Below, piece by piece: positions 6,571 to 15,367 of a stretch of 64,000 bases of DNA. Positions within the stretch are counted from its first letter, which is position 1. Every line of letters starts with the position of its first letter. The DNA comes from Kudoa neothunni (taxonomy: Eukaryota > Animalia > Cnidaria). The translations under genes and the position numbers were made by a program. The stretch spans positions 12,192,524 through 12,256,523 of the forward strand of contig OZ199838.1 in the NCBI GenBank assembly GCA_964304625.1. The letters are read 5' to 3'. Below the pieces are notes generated by a model. The model was given only the letters and a program-made list of their open reading frames with translations, was not told where the DNA came from and ran no database searches.

Positions 6571-8763
6571 AATTAGATAATAAATTATTTTTATATTTAA
6601 GCCAAAATTAATAAATTAGCATAAATATCTAGTGGTGCTCGCTTCAACGATCATTATTAACTTATACATTATAAAATGTTATAAATATAAATCATTTCAC
6701 TTAAAATACAAATATATTGTTCGTTAAGTCATGACATGAGACAGCGAAATGTGTAATTATTTATTTTACTGAAATAAATGATACCAGCTTTTTCATTGCC
6801 GTTGTTATTCGTTGGCTTTATATCCCAAACAACAATTGGCGTCAAGTTGGAGCGCTTTTTGAACGACAACCTTCGAATGCGCACGCGAAATTGTGTTGGC
6901 TTACTTGAAGACTTTCAATACGTTTCTTTAATGGATGAGTGTTAATTAAAAATCCTTATTTAGTTCCGTTAACGTTTTTATTTTATCTTAATTAGAACAA
7001 AAAAGAAAATCGACACACTAATATAGCAAGATTCTGAACGTAAAACGTGCGAATCGATAAAATACATGTTGCAAAGTTTATTTAATTCCTGCACTTTTAA
7101 TAATTTAAACTTGTAAGTTAAATTGATTAGCTTTGACTTTTGATCTGGTTGAGTTTAATTGATTTGATACTAGAAATTTAAAATGAAGGGAAATAATAAC
7201 CGTTCCTTTGATATTTTCTATCATTATGTACAGTATTCTACGAAATCATATACTTATATCTAAATATGGGTTAATAAAGAAATAATAAAAGAATTTAAAA
7301 CTCGACAGATGAACATCTTACTAACATCTACGCAATTTGGATATAATTAACTTAATAAATAGTGAATTTTCGTATGAAAAAGTTGTAATTCTTAATTACT
7401 ATCAAAAATACAATTAATGTTGCAATTTTTTAATATTATAGATTAGACGAAAGGCCGTTCGTTATCCCACTGAAGCCTCAAAAATGAAATATATTAATCG
7501 TTAACACAAGAGTTCGTTGTCAGATAAACATCTTAGTGCATTTCGTATGGTTGGAATTACTCTTTATTCACCGATAGGGGATAAAATGTTAGCCAACAGA
7601 AATCAGTTTAATATCTAAACAAATATTTCCCTTATTTCATTTTTATGACGATTTTTTTAAACAAAAGTTCAATCCGGCCCTCGAAGCTTATAAAAATCAT
7701 AAATTTTGCCATCCAGTCGAAAACTTTGGTGACTCCTGTGCTAACTATTGTAAATTATATTACTGTTTGTTTCGTCACATGAATTGAAGATTAGATGGAT
7801 TAACGATAATTATTTTAACATCTAAACACCACAAAAATTCCAAAAGAAATAATTGAACGGATTCATAAGGAGGAAGAATTTTCATTTCAATATATTTTTA
7901 ATATTTGTCTTTAAATATAAATATTAATAATCCCTAAGGTTTATTTTTGGCGTGCATACTTTAGCAATGTTATCTATTGAATATTCCAATTCCACATGAA
8001 TAAAAAAGTAAAAATATCTTTCGAAAAGAATATCGTAATTAGATGCAAATTTTACGAGCCAATCATTAATTATTACATCGTTGCATGGTTACATGGAGAT
8101 TATATGTGATTCTCTTTAACTATTCAAGTTTCATATCATGTGATGAATGAAGATAACAATAGGAGCTCGCTGATTAGAATAAAAAAGATAAATACTATTG
8201 TTGATTTACGAATGCATAATCAAGAAAGACATAATGATATCAACTCGAAATAAAAATTAAAATGATTCAGCGCGAATTAACAAAGCCGCTGATAGTTTAT
8301 TGATGATTGTGTCAATCGTTACATCCATTGCAAAGTCAATCAGTATTTCTAATTTAACCAAACCATCTGCGTTCGTAATAATGTTGTTGTTGTTGATAAT
8401 TTAATATTCAATCGTATCGTTGTTTTTTAATACTGATTATTTAAATTAAACTCTTAGAATTAGCTTTTAATATTTAAATGTACTATTTACATACAATATA
8501 AAGGCTAATAATGATAATGATGACGATAGCTATGTAGCCCAACTTCATTATCGCTATGCGCAAGCAGAGATTCAATCTAACACATTTTCTTTTATGATCT
8601 ATTTCCTTGTGGTTGTTGAGCATATAGTTGATGGGTTAAACTAAATTTATAGATCCGGTAACCTTTTTTACTTGTCTCGAGGTTGATACTGGCATACGTG
8701 AGAGTGTTTTAATTATCGTCGTGATTTATACTTAATAGGATTAATTCATTTTGTGGTGGAACG

Positions 8764-11700
8764 ATGATGCTGCAGCATCGTTATATGTGTTTTTTATTTC
8801 TATTGGCGATTATTAAAACGTTAATTTTGATAGATTGCACATTGGTAATCAATAGTTTATTGTTTGAGTTACTATTGTGATATGTATAGTGTATTGAGAA
8901 CGGGGCTGGTGGAAGCTACGGTCCGAATGATGCTAAATTAATTGTTTCAACGATTGAAGGATCTTTACTTATTATAAGAAAATTAGATGGGAAAATATTG
9001 CTAAATCTCAAAGGAAGTAATTGCCGCTTTTCATTGGGTAGCGGTGTAACAGTTTTATATAGGAGCAATGATTGAGGGATTCAATCATATGAAAGACAAA
9101 TATGAATTGCTATTAGGAACCTCCAAGGAGCATATTCAATTCAGAAAATTGTTGGATGGTGATCCAAATGATCCGAAAGTATCTTTGTGCATTTGTTTTT
9201 GATCGAAATCACCAAATGGCGCATAGGACATCACAACATCGTTGAAACAACTCACAACGAATGGTTTTGAATTCGGATCGGATCTCATTTCATTAAGTAA
9301 TTTTTTGTAGAATCGTTAACCAATTTCAATGCTTATTTATATTTAGGTTCTCATAGAGACACTCTTCATTTGATTGACCTTCAAAAACCTCAAGTTAAAT
9401 CAGTAACCACTTTCGATGTTGATAATGATAATCTTTATAATTCTCATGAGTTGGCCATAAGTATGTTTTTAGTGATATTTTTGGTGTATGGAATCTGTTT
9501 GTTTAAGAACATGCTGATGAACCCGATGATTCCGTTAATGACAGTTATAATTCAGATGGATTGATTAAAGCCGGTGAAGACATGTTGTCGTTGGATAATG
9601 AGGGCAAATCGTTTCCAACTTTCTCTGATGCAACGATGTATTTATTGGTTTTATGAATGGATGATTGGATCGGGATGGAGTTTGAACTATTTTTTACGAT
9701 TTTAGCTTACCGAATTTCAGTGTACAATTTGGAGGAGAAAAAGGAACTTGGTCGTTTGAACTATGTTGTTTTCCCTCAGTTGGAAGAGGCTAGTTATGTG
9801 GACGGTATTTATTATTAATGATGGGATGTGACTTAATAATCTCAATTCTGCTATTATGATATCAAATTAATGAGGTTATCATTAAAAAGTATCTTAATTT
9901 TATTTCAAATTTAAACATCTATTAATTCCATAAGTAATCAGAATCGCGCTCATTTAGAATAAGATACCATATTTTTAAAACCTATTTTCACGTTATTTTG
10001 TTAATGATGGTTTTCCTCTCATAATTGAAATTTGGGTTGATAAGCTATAAGTAGAGATCACAGTTTTTCAATTATAATCTATTTTAGTAGTCGAATTTTT
10101 TTAAAAGTTTCGACGGGGTTCCCAGAAAAATTCGAAATCTTCTGAAAAACTTGAACGGGATAGTAGCCGAGGAGTAATTGATAGTTTTATTATTGAATGG
10201 ATCGACATCAAGAAGGTGACAAATGAGTTAGCCTGTCAATATTGCAAAGTGAAATTATCTCCACAACAGCATAGAATTTACAAGCAAATAAAGTCGAAGA
10301 ACCAAACGTTGTTAAAAAAAGGCTTTTCAAGATACTTCTCTTCAAGTTATTTTTTTAGAGGTAAAAAAATGACAAAATTGATCAAAATTTGATTTCTGTT
10401 GTTGTTCTCGACGTTTCGTCTGCCATTGGTATTTTATAAGGAAAGTTTTTTTGTAGGGATCTTGTTACGAATTTTTTAAATAACGTTGAAAAGATGCGAT
10501 CCCTAGCTATAAGGGCTCATTACAATGTTGCATTAAATCCGCAGTGCTATGCGCGCACGTGTATATCAAATTAATTTAAAGTTTCGGTTCGCTTTTATAA
10601 AGTATATTTTTAGTTATAGTTACATTTATGAAGTATTATTGATTTATTTGATGAATATGCATTGAGTGTGCGTAATTTTAGCAATGAAGAAAAATACATT
10701 GATTGAAAACTTTGAAAACTAGCTTATTCGTTTAAAATATTTTTCATCTGTATTTTTACCAACAAGATAATACCTATTATTGATTTGTTATGTAATTGTA
10801 AAATTTCAACGAACTTCTTTTAATGCGGCAATCAATATCAAATTTACTCATTTTTTTCCTTGAGTCATGATATATGCATGTAATATATTTTTTTAAATAT
10901 AATCGACGTATATGCACAAAATATCTTTTTTATCACGTATAACCATGATGCACAATTTTTGTAGGCATAAATTAGAATATTACCAACGACGGGTAACCTT
11001 GAGAAGGCCACATCTTATATATGTCATTTTACCTACATTCATGTACAGATACCTATTATTATATTTTCTTGTAAATCCTCTACGAAATTATTCGCTGAAG
11101 ATTTTTGGAAAAACTTAGTATTGCGATCGTTAGTTTGTTTGAGATATTTTCAATTGGTTAAGTTGGGGTGGATCGCAGGCAATATTTTTTAAAAAACTGT
11201 ACCAATATTGAGACTGTTAAATATTTATTTTTGCGCTACAAAAAATCCCGTCAAAGGTATATCAACCATGTAAAATATAAAAAGCAATTCCATCTAATAG
11301 TCTTTTTACAGAAACATGTGTCCATTTTTTCGACTCATCATATTGATTTTTTTGCAATATTTTATTATCGGTTGAATTTATTTTTATGAGTTTAATCTAT
11401 TTTTATTTTATTTGTGCATTAAATTCAAAAAATATTTTTCAGCTAATTTTCATCTGCGAAAAGCAAACCATACATATTATTACTTTTAAAATGAATGATA
11501 ACTTGTTTATTACAGTCTATCTATCCAAAAAGAGATGTTTCTTTTTCTAGTTGTGTTGTCCCAGTAGCCTCACAGTGAAATGATCTGCTTTTGATAACTC
11601 CACCGAAATTATTAGTCGTTAGAGTTATGGCGAACTAAATTGTTTCTGGCGCAATAAACTTATCTAATAATGTTTTATATTTCCCACAATTTTATCCTCC

Positions 11701-14700
11701 TTAGTTTTTTCTGTTATAGATTTATTATCAATTTATGCATGAATATTTATTACAAATGAGATTGTGGATTTAATCAAAGAAAAATTTAAATCCATTGTTG
11801 GTAGATTTATTTTTATGCATTGTCTAAAGAAATGTTACCCCCGCCCCATCGGAAATCATCTCTTCATAGACATGTTTCAAAGGACTGGGGTTCTTGATAG
11901 CTAATCAAATCGAATATTCCAGGTTCTTCCAATTCCTTCTAGGTCTCGTTTTGCCATGTATACAAAACTTTGTTCTTTGCTTTTAGTACCATTCTTACTA
12001 GATCCTGATAAACACCAGAGTCAATGTAGAGAATATACAGTATTGTTTGTTTCATAACTACCAAACATTTGTTCTATTCGTTTGTCACTACCAATGAGCC
12101 AGCCATTTATAAGACATGATTAATAAATCTATTACATTTATATCATTATATATATCATTAGGTATAGTTGGATTTTAAGAATTCGAATTTCTCCCCAAAT
12201 ATTTGACTTTTTATTATTTTTGAAAGAAAAATAACCCCAATATACCTTTTGACACTTTTGGCGGAATTAAAGTTACGCTCACTCAAAAAATTACCACCTC
12301 ATTTTCCAGTTTTTCAATTTTACTAAATTAACAAAAAATTGCCATTTTAACTAATGTAAGATTTATTGGAATCTATCAACATTGTAATTTTATTTTTTTA
12401 ATTCCTTAATATCTCTTAAATTACTGTTGATTTCAGCTAGTTTCGTGATAAGGTATATCCTAGAAAAAATCAGCACGAAACAATTATGGTTTGTATAAAG
12501 CAATATGTAATTGTTTATTTAAGGAGATTTTTTATTAAAATAAAAAAACCATCTTACAATGATAAAAATTGCGATCTATTTAGACCCTCATTTACTATAG
12601 TTTACCTAAAGTTATGATAATTAAGAAAATTTACTTAAAATTAAATAAAATATGAAACTGTGCTTAAAGTTGAGAAGATTATCCAACTTTGCTTGAAACT
12701 AGTTAAAGTAGGAAAATTTGCTAAGATCGGTTCAAACTATCTTATTAAAACTTTTTAATCTATAGTTTATAATATTTACATTTCAAGTATGTTTGTTCTG
12801 TAAAATCTTTAACTATTGAGGATAATCCACCACAATTTATTTTGCTCAAAAATGAGACTTGTTGTGCTTCTCTAGTTAACCCGCTTGTGTTAAATCTTGT
12901 GGCAAGCTAATTGTTTTTCGTCATTTTTCTAATCTTAAATGTCTATTCGATTTTTTGACTGGTCGAGTTATTGCTATCAGATTGGGAGTTGAGATCATTC
13001 GTTTTATTTTTTTCAATTCATCTTTACCATTTAATTACATGTCGATATAGATGACAGCACTTACTTTTTTTCGATTCATTCCAACAAGTTAGCCTCGGTG
13101 AACCTATTAAAAAGTAAACACTTTTGTTATGCTTATATTTATCGTATTACTTTTATATGAACCGCTGGAACTTATTATAGAAAAGCTTAACTGGATAGTA
13201 AGGTTAGACTCTCATTTGTTCTCAGTCGGATTACTGGACAGCCGAGAAAAACTGGACGTTAGGCGCCTAACAGTGAACTTTGTTACCGAGCGAATCATGC
13301 AAGAAATCATACTACGTGTTGAAAACAAGCAGAACCTTGAAATGTTCTCTTCATTAGAGTTTGTGAAAAACAATTTGATGTAATTCCGCATTATCTTTGA
13401 TTACGCGTGTAAGCTAATATTTTCATGCAGAAACGTAGAAATATTGAGGGATTCGAACGGAGTGAAGCTCTTTTTTGATTCTCCTGTAAAGGTAATAGAT
13501 TGAGGATGAGTGTTTTTGATCAACAGCGATTCAGGGAGACGGTTGTAAACCAGCCGGCCAATTTGGAATCCAGAATCAAGCCTGCGACAACCACATAGTT
13601 ACTGCCGACACTGTTAATGAAATGAGTCAATCTGTTGGTTATCTTCTCGCTTTGCGAACCAACGGCACTGATAATAACGACGAGGATAGCAGGTCTACCA
13701 GTGAATCACATGAAATAACCCCATCCAAAGGTACCCTTAGGAATGTTGAAGACCCAGCAAAAGTGCTATTGTTATACAGGCAGATGATTAGATTTATGAC
13801 TCGCTTCAAAAAATATGCTATCAAATATATACCCCTTTCCGAGAATTTGGCTGATTCGTTCATCAACTACAGTGCCCTTATAATGTTGGGATACACATTG
13901 ATGTATATATGCAGAACTATTGGTCATACTTGGGGTAATAAATTGCCATCGTTGATTAAATCGAATCTGATCAAATCTTGCTATCCTGAAAATGGCAGTG
14001 TAATCCAATTTCTCAATATGGAGTTCAATGTGGATGATCATCTTAATGATGTGGCATCAGTTTCAAACACCAGCAAACTAACCACATTCAAAGGATTGTA
14101 CAAAAATAAACCTGTTGTGATTCGTCGATATGAGAACAATGTTCAATGCGATGGAAATCAAATCCTTATGCCTTCATCAACGTTCAGCCACCAATTTCAC
14201 GTTTCAAATTCAGTTCCTTTCAACAAACACATTGTCAAATTTGTGGGAAGTGAAATTGGTGTACGATATTCGTATCTCATGACGGAGTTGTATTCTTACA
14301 ACTTGGAACAATTTTTTCAATGCGAGCACTCATCTGATGTCCTTGATATTAAGACCAAAATCAATATGCTGTACCAACTTATGAAAGGAGTGAAACACCT
14401 ACATGCCAATCGATTTGCTCATGGCGCCCTTATACCAAAGAATATTTTGGTTGATCTCGATAGAAATACAAAACAATTGCGTGTGACCATCTCTAATTAT
14501 AGTAAAAGTCATGTTCTCGACGCTTCTATCACTACGGCTGATTGCGTATCCACGTCAGCAGATCCAAATGATAATTCACCAACAAAGAACATTAACGGTA
14601 ACAACGTCCGTTCTACAGACAAAGACTATTTCAATTCTAACACACCCATACTCAGCGAAGCTCTAAAACACAGTACCAATGATATCTACGAATTTGGTAT

Positions 14701-15367
14701 GCTAGCAATCTACATTATGTGCAATGGAACGCTTCCAACTAATTGGGTCTGGGGCAGCAACCATATTCCATCTCGTCCTCAAATCGAATCCCTTCTAGGG
14801 ACTCATTGCAAATCAGTGGCGCACGAAGTTATTGATCTGCTTACTAAATGTTTTTGTCCCAATCTTGCTTATCGCATTTCAGCCAATCAGCTGATTAATC
14901 ATCCCCTATTTTGGAACTATGAAAAGAAAGGATTGTTCATATCTGAAGTGAGCAACCACATCGAAAATTTAGTTCCAGGGCATTACGTTCTCAAAAAATT
15001 GGAGCGAAACTCGTGTGATGCAGTGAGAGGAAATTGGGCCGACATGGTCAGTGCTGATATCATGAAAGATGTCACCAGACATCGAACCTATCGTGGTGAT
15101 AGTGTCAAAGATTTACTGAGAGTTATTCGAAATAAGGTATTTTTGGATAAAAATCAGCTGTTTATAACAACTATTTTTATTTGTTAGAGAAATCATTTTA
15201 ACGACACATGCTCAGAAGTGTCCAGTAGATTCGAGTCTGCCGATCAACTCACCGAATATTTCATACAATTATTCCCAAAACTGATCATGCATGTTCATAA
15301 AGTCATTAGAGAATGCAATAAAAATGATATCCCCAATTTGGCAAAGTTCTTTGTCGGGGTTGTGTAA
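8764..15367 (+). CDS. IRE1: IRE1-like ER transmembrane protein: signal peptide, luminal domain, TM helix, pseudokinase, KEN ribonuclease (multi-exon)
   Basis: ATG 8764 gives a signal peptide MMLQHRYMCFLFLLAIIKTLILIDCTL. Luminal motifs LIVSTIEGSLLIIRKLDGKILLNLK (IRE1 [25 protein letters not shown]), DTLHLIDL, YRISVYNLEEKKELGRLNY, LNWIVRLDS. In-frame 3246-nt intron 9805-13050. TM FINYSALIMLGYTLMYI. Kinase fold then KEN: HPLFW...RTYRGDSVKDLLRVIRNK|RNHF...YFIQLFPKLIMH, with intron 15137-15187; stop 15365-15367. Confidence 0.88.

Follow-up and report, generated by a model that had tools for sequence, protein, structure and literature searches.

A predicted IRE1 pseudokinase with a preserved KEN ribonuclease domain in the parasitic cnidarian Kudoa neothunni

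How the kinase domain of IRE1 controls the adjoining ribonuclease (RNase), whether by phosphotransfer, by nucleotide occupancy or by pairing, has been disputed for two decades, and the tests brought to bear on the question have so far consisted of engineered mutants and inhibitors. A natural IRE1 present as a sole copy, with its kinase motifs erased in a genome that has conserved the XBP1 switch, would constitute an evolutionary experiment on the same relationship. We have analysed a candidate for such a protein, which is encoded on the forward (+) strand at positions 8764-15367 of a 64,000-nucleotide (nt) stretch of DNA from the myxozoan Kudoa neothunni (in the following termed the window, ~30% GC, contig OZ199838.1 of GenBank assembly GCA_964304625.1, C1:12,192,524-12,256,523 of 40.26 Mb assembled in 4 pieces). 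The gene comprises 12 exons with 2,889 nt, equivalent to 963 codons, with GT-AG borders in all introns and consistent phases, and its predicted product contains a signal peptide, a divergent luminal domain of the IRE1 type and one transmembrane (TM) segment, followed by a protein-kinase fold and the RNase domain KEN. An earlier note on this DNA, made from the sequence alone, had described the locus as an IRE1 of complete architecture in a spliceable frame, which combines a dead kinase with an intact KEN domain, and this description is borne out by the exon structure, by Pfam and hhalign comparisons and by homology to a contig of a relative (L004). As judged from its sequence, the protein has kept the full layout of an IRE1 and is likely the single member of its family in this animal, which would operate independently of phosphotransfer and still splice XBP1.

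The proposed loss of kinase function is manifested in the sequence of the predicted pseudokinase domain (14051-14899), whose placement is defined by three alignments and by the exact location of its motifs. For its characterization, we have used the alignments A1 and A2 and a 151-sequence MAFFT alignment, which contain 57-150 canonical IRE1 sequences, whereas a further alignment (A3) covers the equivalent of human H910. We have also included the sole close relative found when 1.84 billion cluster representatives were searched exhaustively with HMMER, a protein of 548 residues (P0001, 36% identity, E 5.5e-54) encoded on the myxozoan-like contig L004 (3,650 nt, 18% GC, run SRR31175926). In Pfam, the kinase region is recognized by just a partial Pkinase match (E 8e-13, approximately profile positions 50-140 of 263). 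The Gly-loop signature G.G..G is replaced by V.N..K in the window (VASVSNTSKLTTFKG, 14051-14095) and is devoid of glycines in P0001, and the VAVK motif of β-strand 3 has changed to VVIR (K to R, 14114-14125) in the former and to AAIC (K to C) in the latter. The Glu of helix αC is a Gln in the window (~14192-14194) and is retained in P0001. In place of HRDLKP.N, the catalytic loop reads HGALIPKN in the window (HGALIP at 14420-14437), with Arg, catalytic Asp and Lys (K to I) missing and the Asn present, and HGNLSCQN in P0001. The DFG motif is replaced by NYS (14495-14503) and DFK, respectively, and the activation segment with its GT.GW.APE motif by a disordered insert of about 55 residues that is rich in S, T, N and D, which is shorter in P0001. 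The replacements in the window from the Gly-loop to the DFG motif had been noticed before, that of the αC Glu as an apparent one, and are found in all three alignments. For the APE motif, which was described to read LSE, it holds that the motif is not conserved in any register, but the placement of LSE itself cannot be fixed since the activation segment is an unalignable insert modelled with low confidence. When quantified by columns whose conservation across 57 canonical IRE1s reaches 90% or more, the window retains 5 of 22 positions in the N-lobe and 18 of 39 in the C-lobe of the kinase, compared to 12/22 and 19/39 in P0001.

Such a pattern is exceptional in the family. Among the best 150 database matches, 127 retain the Lys and the Asp residues of the HRD and DFG motifs, and the remainder are mostly fragments, with only two truly substituted cases, one of them a fused plant gene model and the other a protein from a mussel. 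The latter (P0060, Sinanodonta woodiana, KAL3837646.1, 597 residues) contains a kinase fold and a KEN domain, with HRD changed to HGN and DFG to SFA, whereas the β3 Lys and the αC Glu are kept; its first 226 residues harbour no Pfam domain, and it may be an undescribed pseudokinase-KEN protein of invertebrates. As a control, we have inspected four other kinase loci of the Kudoa genome, which contain DFG in 4/4, GxGxxG in 3/4 and a strict HRD.K..N pattern in 2/4 cases. Since these kinases are intact, the erosion is particular to IRE1 and does not reflect a general drift in the lineage. Based on its motifs, the kinase fold is thus a pseudokinase that would be unable to transfer phosphate and that has also lost most of the canonical nucleotide-binding residues. 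By descent and architecture the protein is an IRE1, and by the expected enzymology of its kinase it is not.

Conversely, the KEN domain is well preserved. Its two parts are detected by the Pfam profile PF06479 (Ribonuc_2-5A) in exon 11 (E 1.9e-15) and exon 12 (E 1.3e-5), in both cases above the curated cut-off. The N-terminal part (14900-15136, extending from HPLFW to TYRGDSVKDLLRVIRNK at 15086-15136) contains the equivalents of human Y892, R905, N906 and K907, and the C-terminal part, which starts with RNHF at 15188, contains the equivalent of H910, as confirmed in A1, A2, A3 and the 151-sequence alignment. All motif coordinates that had been assigned previously are exact, and the proposal of an intact active site has equally held up. 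The retained motifs include HPLFW, F..VS, LE, W, R.Y.G.S..DLLR..RNK and the His of (K/R)(H/N)H(Y/F). Within the part encoded by exon 11, 18 of the 21 near-invariant columns are kept in the window (86%) and the same number in P0001 (18/21), and in exon 12 A3 shows invariant columns for the His, the Asp, YF and FP.L. The first codon of exon 12 (15188-15190) places an Arg after RNK at the position of Tyr1059 of the yeast protein, which is a Lys in P0001. In yeast Ire1, the mutation Y1059R combined with K992D confers promiscuous activity resembling S. pombe Ire1 (PMC8104961), and the Arg found in the window may be linked to the relaxed loop sequences of the XBP1-like gene described below.

The assignment to IRE1 is supported by sequence and structure comparisons. 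Besides P0001, the matches in the HMMER search are canonical IRE1s with 21-30% identity (E 7e-24 or weaker), and a phmmer search of the PDB returns yeast and human IRE1 at E 8.5e-23 to 1e-21, compared to 1.6e-7 for RNase L and 1e-7 or weaker for ordinary kinases. An AlphaFold2 model of the product of 13985-15136, calculated from an input alignment of 59 rows, shows a mean predicted local distance difference test score (pLDDT) of 84.9, with the Gly-loop and the activation segment as the only parts that score less than 50, and a predicted TM-score (pTM) of 0.83, and in a Foldseek comparison of this model with the PDB the top 50 matches are all IRE1 (TM-score ~0.65-0.71). Sequence and model thus both place a predicted protein-kinase fold directly before the KEN domain, with IRE1 as nearest relative among kinases, and the comparison between IRE1 and RNase L that had been suggested as a check is decided in favour of the former. 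Membership in the RNase L group was rejected, as Pfam finds no ankyrin match and as signal peptide, luminal exons and TM segment are present; a pseudokinase of the RNase L type with canonical nucleotide-binding residues also does not describe the protein, in which the β3 Lys, the Gly-loop and the DFG Asp are gone.

No second KEN or IRE1 locus was found in the 40 Mb assembly when searched with a KEN profile, with the protein of the gene itself and with a canonical IRE1 kinase-KEN query, which apart from the generic kinase region detect this locus only, and the gene is the single IRE1 orthologue of the assembly. As far as this assembly is concerned, its one KEN locus refutes the idea that the protein might assist a canonical paralogue as regulatory partner. 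Word-indexed protein searches with the IRE1 exon and with the KEN domain of the relative returned nothing or the query alone, from an index that is insensitive for a divergent AT-rich protein. Since P0001 shares the same core losses, these must be older than the split of both lineages, with the window having lost further residues, and the retention of the αC Glu and of the DF of DFG in P0001 indicates a stepwise decay under a maintained frame.

A sensor of this kind would be expected to leave traces in its substrate. The genome-wide search for an XBP1 with an unconventional intron, which the earlier note had proposed, led to the best locus for a basic leucine zipper (bZIP) protein (L005, G000:C3:3938633), which is assigned to generic bZIP clusters only in an atlas look-up. 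It contains an open reading frame (ORF) at 1273-2061 of L005 with the basic region YRKLKNRISAQNSRERRRK and a second ORF in another frame, which overlaps from about 1827 to 2075. The region 1818-1868 folds into two adjacent hairpins (z = -2.3), the first with a 7-bp stem and the 7-nt loop UAG|AAGC, the second with the stem UAUCC/GGAUA and the loop AAG|AAUU, where the bar denotes the presumed cut. Cleavage after the third base of either loop (G1831 and G1854) would excise 23 nt (L005 1832-1854, C3:3,938,964-3,938,986), a segment without GT-AG borders, and with this segment removed translation would continue exactly in the second ORF (...SPCNL-E-LDNMGDGL...). This length is the usual one of invertebrate XBP1 introns. 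A hydrophobic stretch (WITWEMVLMLNMLGFL) is located 3' of the 23-nt intron in the unspliced frame only, as is also the case in the unspliced form of vertebrate XBP1 (XBP1u). A fold of 86 nt reveals an additional outer stem (z = -4.1, with none of 200 shuffled sequences folding as well), which would keep the XBP1 exons together.

The same organization is found in a relative (L018, contig of ENA ERZ795007, protein P0151 with 57% identity), in which both stems are preserved, the loops UUG|AAGC and ACG|AAUU each contain the G that precedes the cut, and the second ORF is likewise present (ELDNIGDGL...). This relative and that of the IRE1 protein are probably from different species. Within the 51-nt core, the two sequences differ by three substitutions, all in unpaired positions, and the identity of the DNA over L005 1769-1909, as estimated by eye, is ~93%, which is above the flanks and compares to 79% in the whole alignment. 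The genome also encodes the ligase RtcB, an enzyme that is required for tRNA splicing too. The genome thus contains both a bZIP gene whose predicted unconventional intron is bounded by twin 7-nt loops and a candidate ligase, with a loop sequence that fits the yeast motif in part, and the conservation of the element indicates that an XBP1 switch of the IRE1 type is under selection. An alternative cut at CTGCAG (L005 1910), considered in variants of 15, 23 and 56 nt, was rejected because the site reads CAACAG in L018, is not closed by a stem and would leave the hydrophobic stretch in both isoforms. The frame-switched ORF ends at 2075 and is followed in the third frame by another ORF of 123 codons (L005 2096-2467), which suggests a conventional intron that joins both at L005 ~2060-2100.

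Taken together, the simplest interpretation of a genome whose only KEN nuclease is accompanied by a conserved switch of the IRE1 type is continued splicing of XBP1 by the pseudokinase IRE1. ER stress would cause the luminal domains to oligomerize, which in turn would bring rigid pseudokinase folds into pairs and juxtapose two KEN domains. The resulting composite RNase would cut the XBP1-like mRNA in its two 7-nt hairpin loops with the removal of 23 nt, and RtcB would join the halves to generate, by the shift in frame, an active transcription factor. We infer that the gene is expressed, that its product does not bind ATP but acts as RNase and that XBP1 is its substrate. Among the roles initially considered, that of a sensor of the unfolded protein response activated by luminal oligomerization is favoured over that of a constitutive nuclease of regulated IRE1-dependent decay (RIDD), because the XBP1 switch is conserved. 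The suggestion that the protein is a selected pseudokinase has also gained support from the losses shared with the relative, which mark the pseudokinase as old and maintained, from the much stronger conservation of KEN compared to the N-lobe, from the intact state of other kinases and from the presence of an XBP1-type 23-nt intron and RtcB. A more specific version, in which the sole IRE1 of the animal would have lost phosphotransfer and canonical nucleotide binding, with the kinase serving as passive scaffold for pairing and XBP1 being spliced by relaxed NG|AA rules, is nearly as likely as not and is proposed here tentatively. A highly reduced parasite may have less need to fine-tune the shut-off of the response, which might explain the loss of kinase function.

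Several observations weigh against these proposals. Both engineered kinase-dead Ire1 and RNase L use a nucleotide cofactor, and here the binding residues are mostly gone. The N-lobe dimer of the human type involves a salt bridge of D620 with R594 and R627 (PMC4536996), and the residue equivalent to D620 is a Pro in the window and a Ser in the relative. Since D620 is not conserved, the dimer interface must differ. In the XBP1-like mRNA, the 3' loop matches the yeast Ire1 cleavage motif CNG|(C/A)NGN (PMC8104961) just in the G that precedes the cleavage site, and in the 5' loop a U is found where the yeast enzyme needs a C. With respect to the gene itself, two junctions display unusually short introns and weak donors (exon 2/3 with 19-28 nt and exon 6/7 with 33 nt), and three RNA runs with the same species label, which probably refers to the host fish, contain zero reads on 8740-14739. 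In the paper describing the K. neothunni genome, "very few" transcriptomic reads were found to map (PMC12239612).

The described features also have to be weighed with respect to other explanations, the first of which concerns the role of nucleotides. If phosphotransfer alone had been lost, ATP or ADP might still bind in a non-canonical manner and act as allosteric cofactor of the RNase, akin to RNase L, whose pseudokinase binds ATP, which stimulates its RNase activity (PMC4718504). Such gating would be in line with the catalytic-loop Asn present in both species, with the αC Glu and the DF of DFG in the relative, with the Lys at the third position of the Gly-loop in the window and with a regulatory spine (R-spine) composed mostly of hydrophobic residues (window S/F/Y/H, relative L/L/F/H, A1). 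However, RNase L contains canonical nucleotide-binding residues, whereas the Gly-loop glycines and the β3 Lys are gone in both species described here, the window is additionally devoid of the DFG Asp and the αC Glu, and its Gly-loop Lys is not found in the relative, which renders this mechanism unlikely, if still credible. The same Lys resembles the arrangement in WNK kinases, where the catalytic Lys is relocated, and could point to an atypical active kinase of this or another non-canonical chemistry. This seems extremely improbable, as the Asp of HRD is an Ala in the window and an Asn in the relative, the Asp of DFG is an Asn in the window, and the relocated Lys is replaced by a Ser in the relative; a WNK-like catalytic Lys was for these reasons, the missing catalytic Asp and the lack of conservation of the Lys, rejected. 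Phosphorylation might alternatively be provided in trans by another kinase acting on the long activation-segment insert, whose ~55 S-, T-, N- and D-rich disordered residues would offer acceptor sites. However, the insert shows little conservation in the relative, where its length is also much smaller, nothing is left of the canonical GT.GW.APE context and no candidate kinase is known, and we thus regard this scenario as quite improbable.

Other explanations concern the output of the RNase and the integrity of the gene. The departure of the XBP1 loops from CNG|(C/A)NGN and the Arg following RNK, which corresponds to a Y1059R-type change that together with K992D renders yeast Ire1 promiscuous (PMC8104961), would both be expected if the RNase acted mainly or only in mRNA decay, either RIDD-like or as constitutive turnover at the ER, and cut XBP1-like hairpins poorly or not at all. 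Yet twin 7-nt loops at an exact spacing of 23 nt, a conserved frame switch and ~93% identity are hard to explain without splicing of the IRE1 type, and the protein is the only one with a KEN domain in the genome, making a restriction to decay improbable. The locus might finally be a non-functional relic or an artefact of annotation, with a decaying gene or with luminal and cytosolic parts on different transcripts, as could be suspected from the RNA runs without reads, the two atypically short introns and the single-base indels by which a low-depth DNA contig deviates from the assembly. Against this stand 12 out of 12 open exons with consistent phases, luminal, TM, kinase and KEN blocks that are conserved in order and on one strand within the 3.6 kb of the contig of the relative at 36% identity, and a KEN domain that has kept 86% of its near-invariant positions. 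A relic or artefact is for these reasons very improbable, and we return to the pseudokinase IRE1 that splices XBP1 as the preferred interpretation.

In the context of known systems, the Kudoa protein shares its domain order and the catalytic residues of the RNase with canonical IRE1 (yeast Ire1p and human IRE1α/ERN1), but differs by the replacement of the Gly-loop, the β3 Lys, the αC Glu, the Arg and Asp of HRD, the Lys of the catalytic loop, DFG and the activation-loop motif, which are all intact in the former. With RNase L it has in common a pseudokinase combined with KEN, where the kinase fold serves as a scaffold for dimerization and not as an enzyme (PMC4718504). RNase L is, in contrast, a cytosolic protein with N-terminal ankyrin repeats and canonical ATP-binding residues that is gated by 2',5'-oligoadenylate (2-5A), whereas the Kudoa protein has a signal peptide, a luminal domain and a TM segment and is devoid of ankyrin repeats. 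In the yeast mutant Ire1(D797N,K799N), the transfer of phosphate is abolished with RNase activity and HAC1 splicing being preserved and deactivation being impaired (PMC3082176). The Kudoa protein resembles a natural counterpart of this mutant, which carries two exchanged residues and an intact nucleotide pocket, whereas in Kudoa the erosion is motif-wide, ancient, common to two species and affects the only IRE1 of the organism. A likeness to S. pombe Ire1 and to S. cerevisiae Ire1(K992D,Y1059R) is found in the Arg after RNK and in cleavage loops that deviate from the stringent yeast motif, with NG|AA in Kudoa compared to CNG|(C/A)NGN. On the other hand, the kinase of S. pombe Ire1 is active and the enzyme lacks a HAC1/XBP1 substrate, and in P0001 RNK is followed by a Lys.

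In the literature searched, whose coverage is incomplete, we did not find a description of a natural IRE1 pseudokinase. If our interpretation is correct, the Kudoa protein would be the first natural IRE1 without kinase function, and autophosphorylation and nucleotide gating would be dispensable additions to an RNase driven by oligomerization. The cytosolic domain is small enough for expression and assays, and the locus illustrates the form that a pared-down unfolded protein response takes in a parasitic animal that is itself highly reduced.

The assignment of the luminal part relies on conservation of weaker but ordered segments. Exons 2-10 encode about 340 luminal residues, with exon 11 beginning in the lumen, and in tblastn searches eight blocks upstream of the kinase have conserved counterparts in L004, with order and strand unchanged (E 2.4e-22 to 0.01). 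When 39 aligned luminal domains of canonical IRE1s serve as template for hhalign, the blocks are collinear with the canonical profile, with exons 2, 7 and 8 reaching E values of 1e-4 to 8e-4, and a simpler search of the luminal exons with hidden Markov models (HMMs) recovered the same order with weaker scores. No match was found in Pfam for single luminal exon pieces, and a search of the genome with the canonical luminal domain detected no match, including to this gene, and is hence too insensitive to address the presence of PERK. A signal peptide, a luminal domain of the IRE1 type and a single TM segment are thus predicted from the sequence.

The exon map underlying this assignment was obtained by reading splice sites and phases by hand, guided by tblastn comparison of the window with L004, and exons were searched singly, with only lengths and phases computed across exons. 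Exon 1 (8764-8844) starts with an ATG at 8764 and encodes in 27 codons the predicted signal peptide, with CFLFLLAIIKTLILI as hydrophobic core (Kyte-Doolittle value of 2.8 over 15 residues) and the donor GTAATC in phase 0. The luminal domain starts in exon 2 (8890-9037), where LIVSTIEGSLLIIRKLDGKILLNLKG corresponds to the strand region of IRE1 with the sequence STLDGSL (hhalign E 1.2e-4, template columns 69-94). The donor of this exon is uncertain, with either 9037 or 9043 as last position, leaving an intron of just 19-28 nt. In exon 3 (9063-9178), the luminal sequence MIEGFNHMKDKYELLLG matches TIEGFNNIKDEYELLLG at L004 59-199, and its donor GTATCT is followed by a 48-nt intron. Exon 4 (9227-9296, DITTSLKQLTTNGFEFGSDLISL) is luminal and matches L004 196-294 in tblastn (E 0.01) and, weakly yet in collinear order, hhalign columns 148-155, and the luminal exon 5 (9347-9460), which is flanked by introns of 50 and 47 nt, both in phase 1, matches L004 248-475 (E 1e-4). 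The least certain exon is exon 6 (9508-9647), an acidic luminal loop defined by phase arithmetic, with the donor GTTTTA and a 33-nt intron next to it. Compared to the assembly, low-depth (2-5x) DNA contigs of run X1 contain single-base indels at 9489, 9615 and 13512 and at several positions in 10000-11325; those at 9489 and 9615 are located in or beside exon 6 and could alter its frame if the assembly is wrong. Exon 7 (9681-9804, YRISVYNLEEKKELGRLNY) encodes luminal sequence related to L004 627-740 (E 1.7e-9) and to hhalign columns 213-239 (E 2.7e-4).

The luminal region continues after intron 7 with exon 8 (13051-13113, DSTYFFSIHSNKLASVNLLK), which matches L004 766-837 (E 6.7e-8) and hhalign columns 258-278 (E 7.9e-4), and with exon 9 (13181-13379), the best conserved luminal block with 49% identity to L004 859-1065 (E 2.4e-22) and a weak match to hhalign columns 279-292. 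Exon 10 (13431-13485) is luminal with a donor at either 13485 or 13491 and is related to L004 1069-1215 (E 5.9e-6). Exon 11 (13535-15136) encodes the end of the luminal domain, the TM segment, the pseudokinase and the first 80 residues of KEN and lies within a 555-codon open frame (13520-15184), which carries the partial Pkinase match and the first half of KEN, with the remainder of the latter residing in the frame 15188-15364. The predicted TM segment (13856-13915, SFINYSALIMLGYTLMYIC) is the best hydrophobic window, with a mean of 1.35, and aligns in A1 with the equivalent segments of the relative and of canonical IRE1s. Intron 11 (15137-15187, 51 nt, phase 0, GTATTT...TTAG) joins RNK (of RVIRNK) in frame to the RNHF of exon 12 (15188-15367), which matches profile positions 91-120 of Ribonuc_2-5A and ends with the stop codon TAA. 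This intron is not present in the relative, where the frame of P0001 is continuous across KEN at the corresponding point.

The K. neothunni assembly, which was extracted from yellowfin-tuna data, is described to consist of three chromosome-scale scaffolds and a circular mitochondrial genome and to have a low GC content and a median intron length of 49 bp (PMC12239612), and typical introns of the gene have a length of 45-51 nt. In the contig of the relative, introns are about 25 nt long at sites where the window contains introns of 45-67 nt or 3.2 kb. The latter refers to intron 7 (9805-13050, 3,246 nt), which had been proposed with the same borders and is supported by its GT and AG ends, phase 1 on both sides and homology with L004, and DNA contigs of run X1 span the region. 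Its counterpart in L004 (740-766) measures ~25 nt, and its growth to 3.2 kb is in part due to a dispersed repeat of ~435 nt at window positions ~10046-10481, which resembles a short interspersed element (SINE) or a miniature inverted-repeat transposable element (MITE) and is found in at least 40 copies with 71-77% identity on all three large pieces of the genome.

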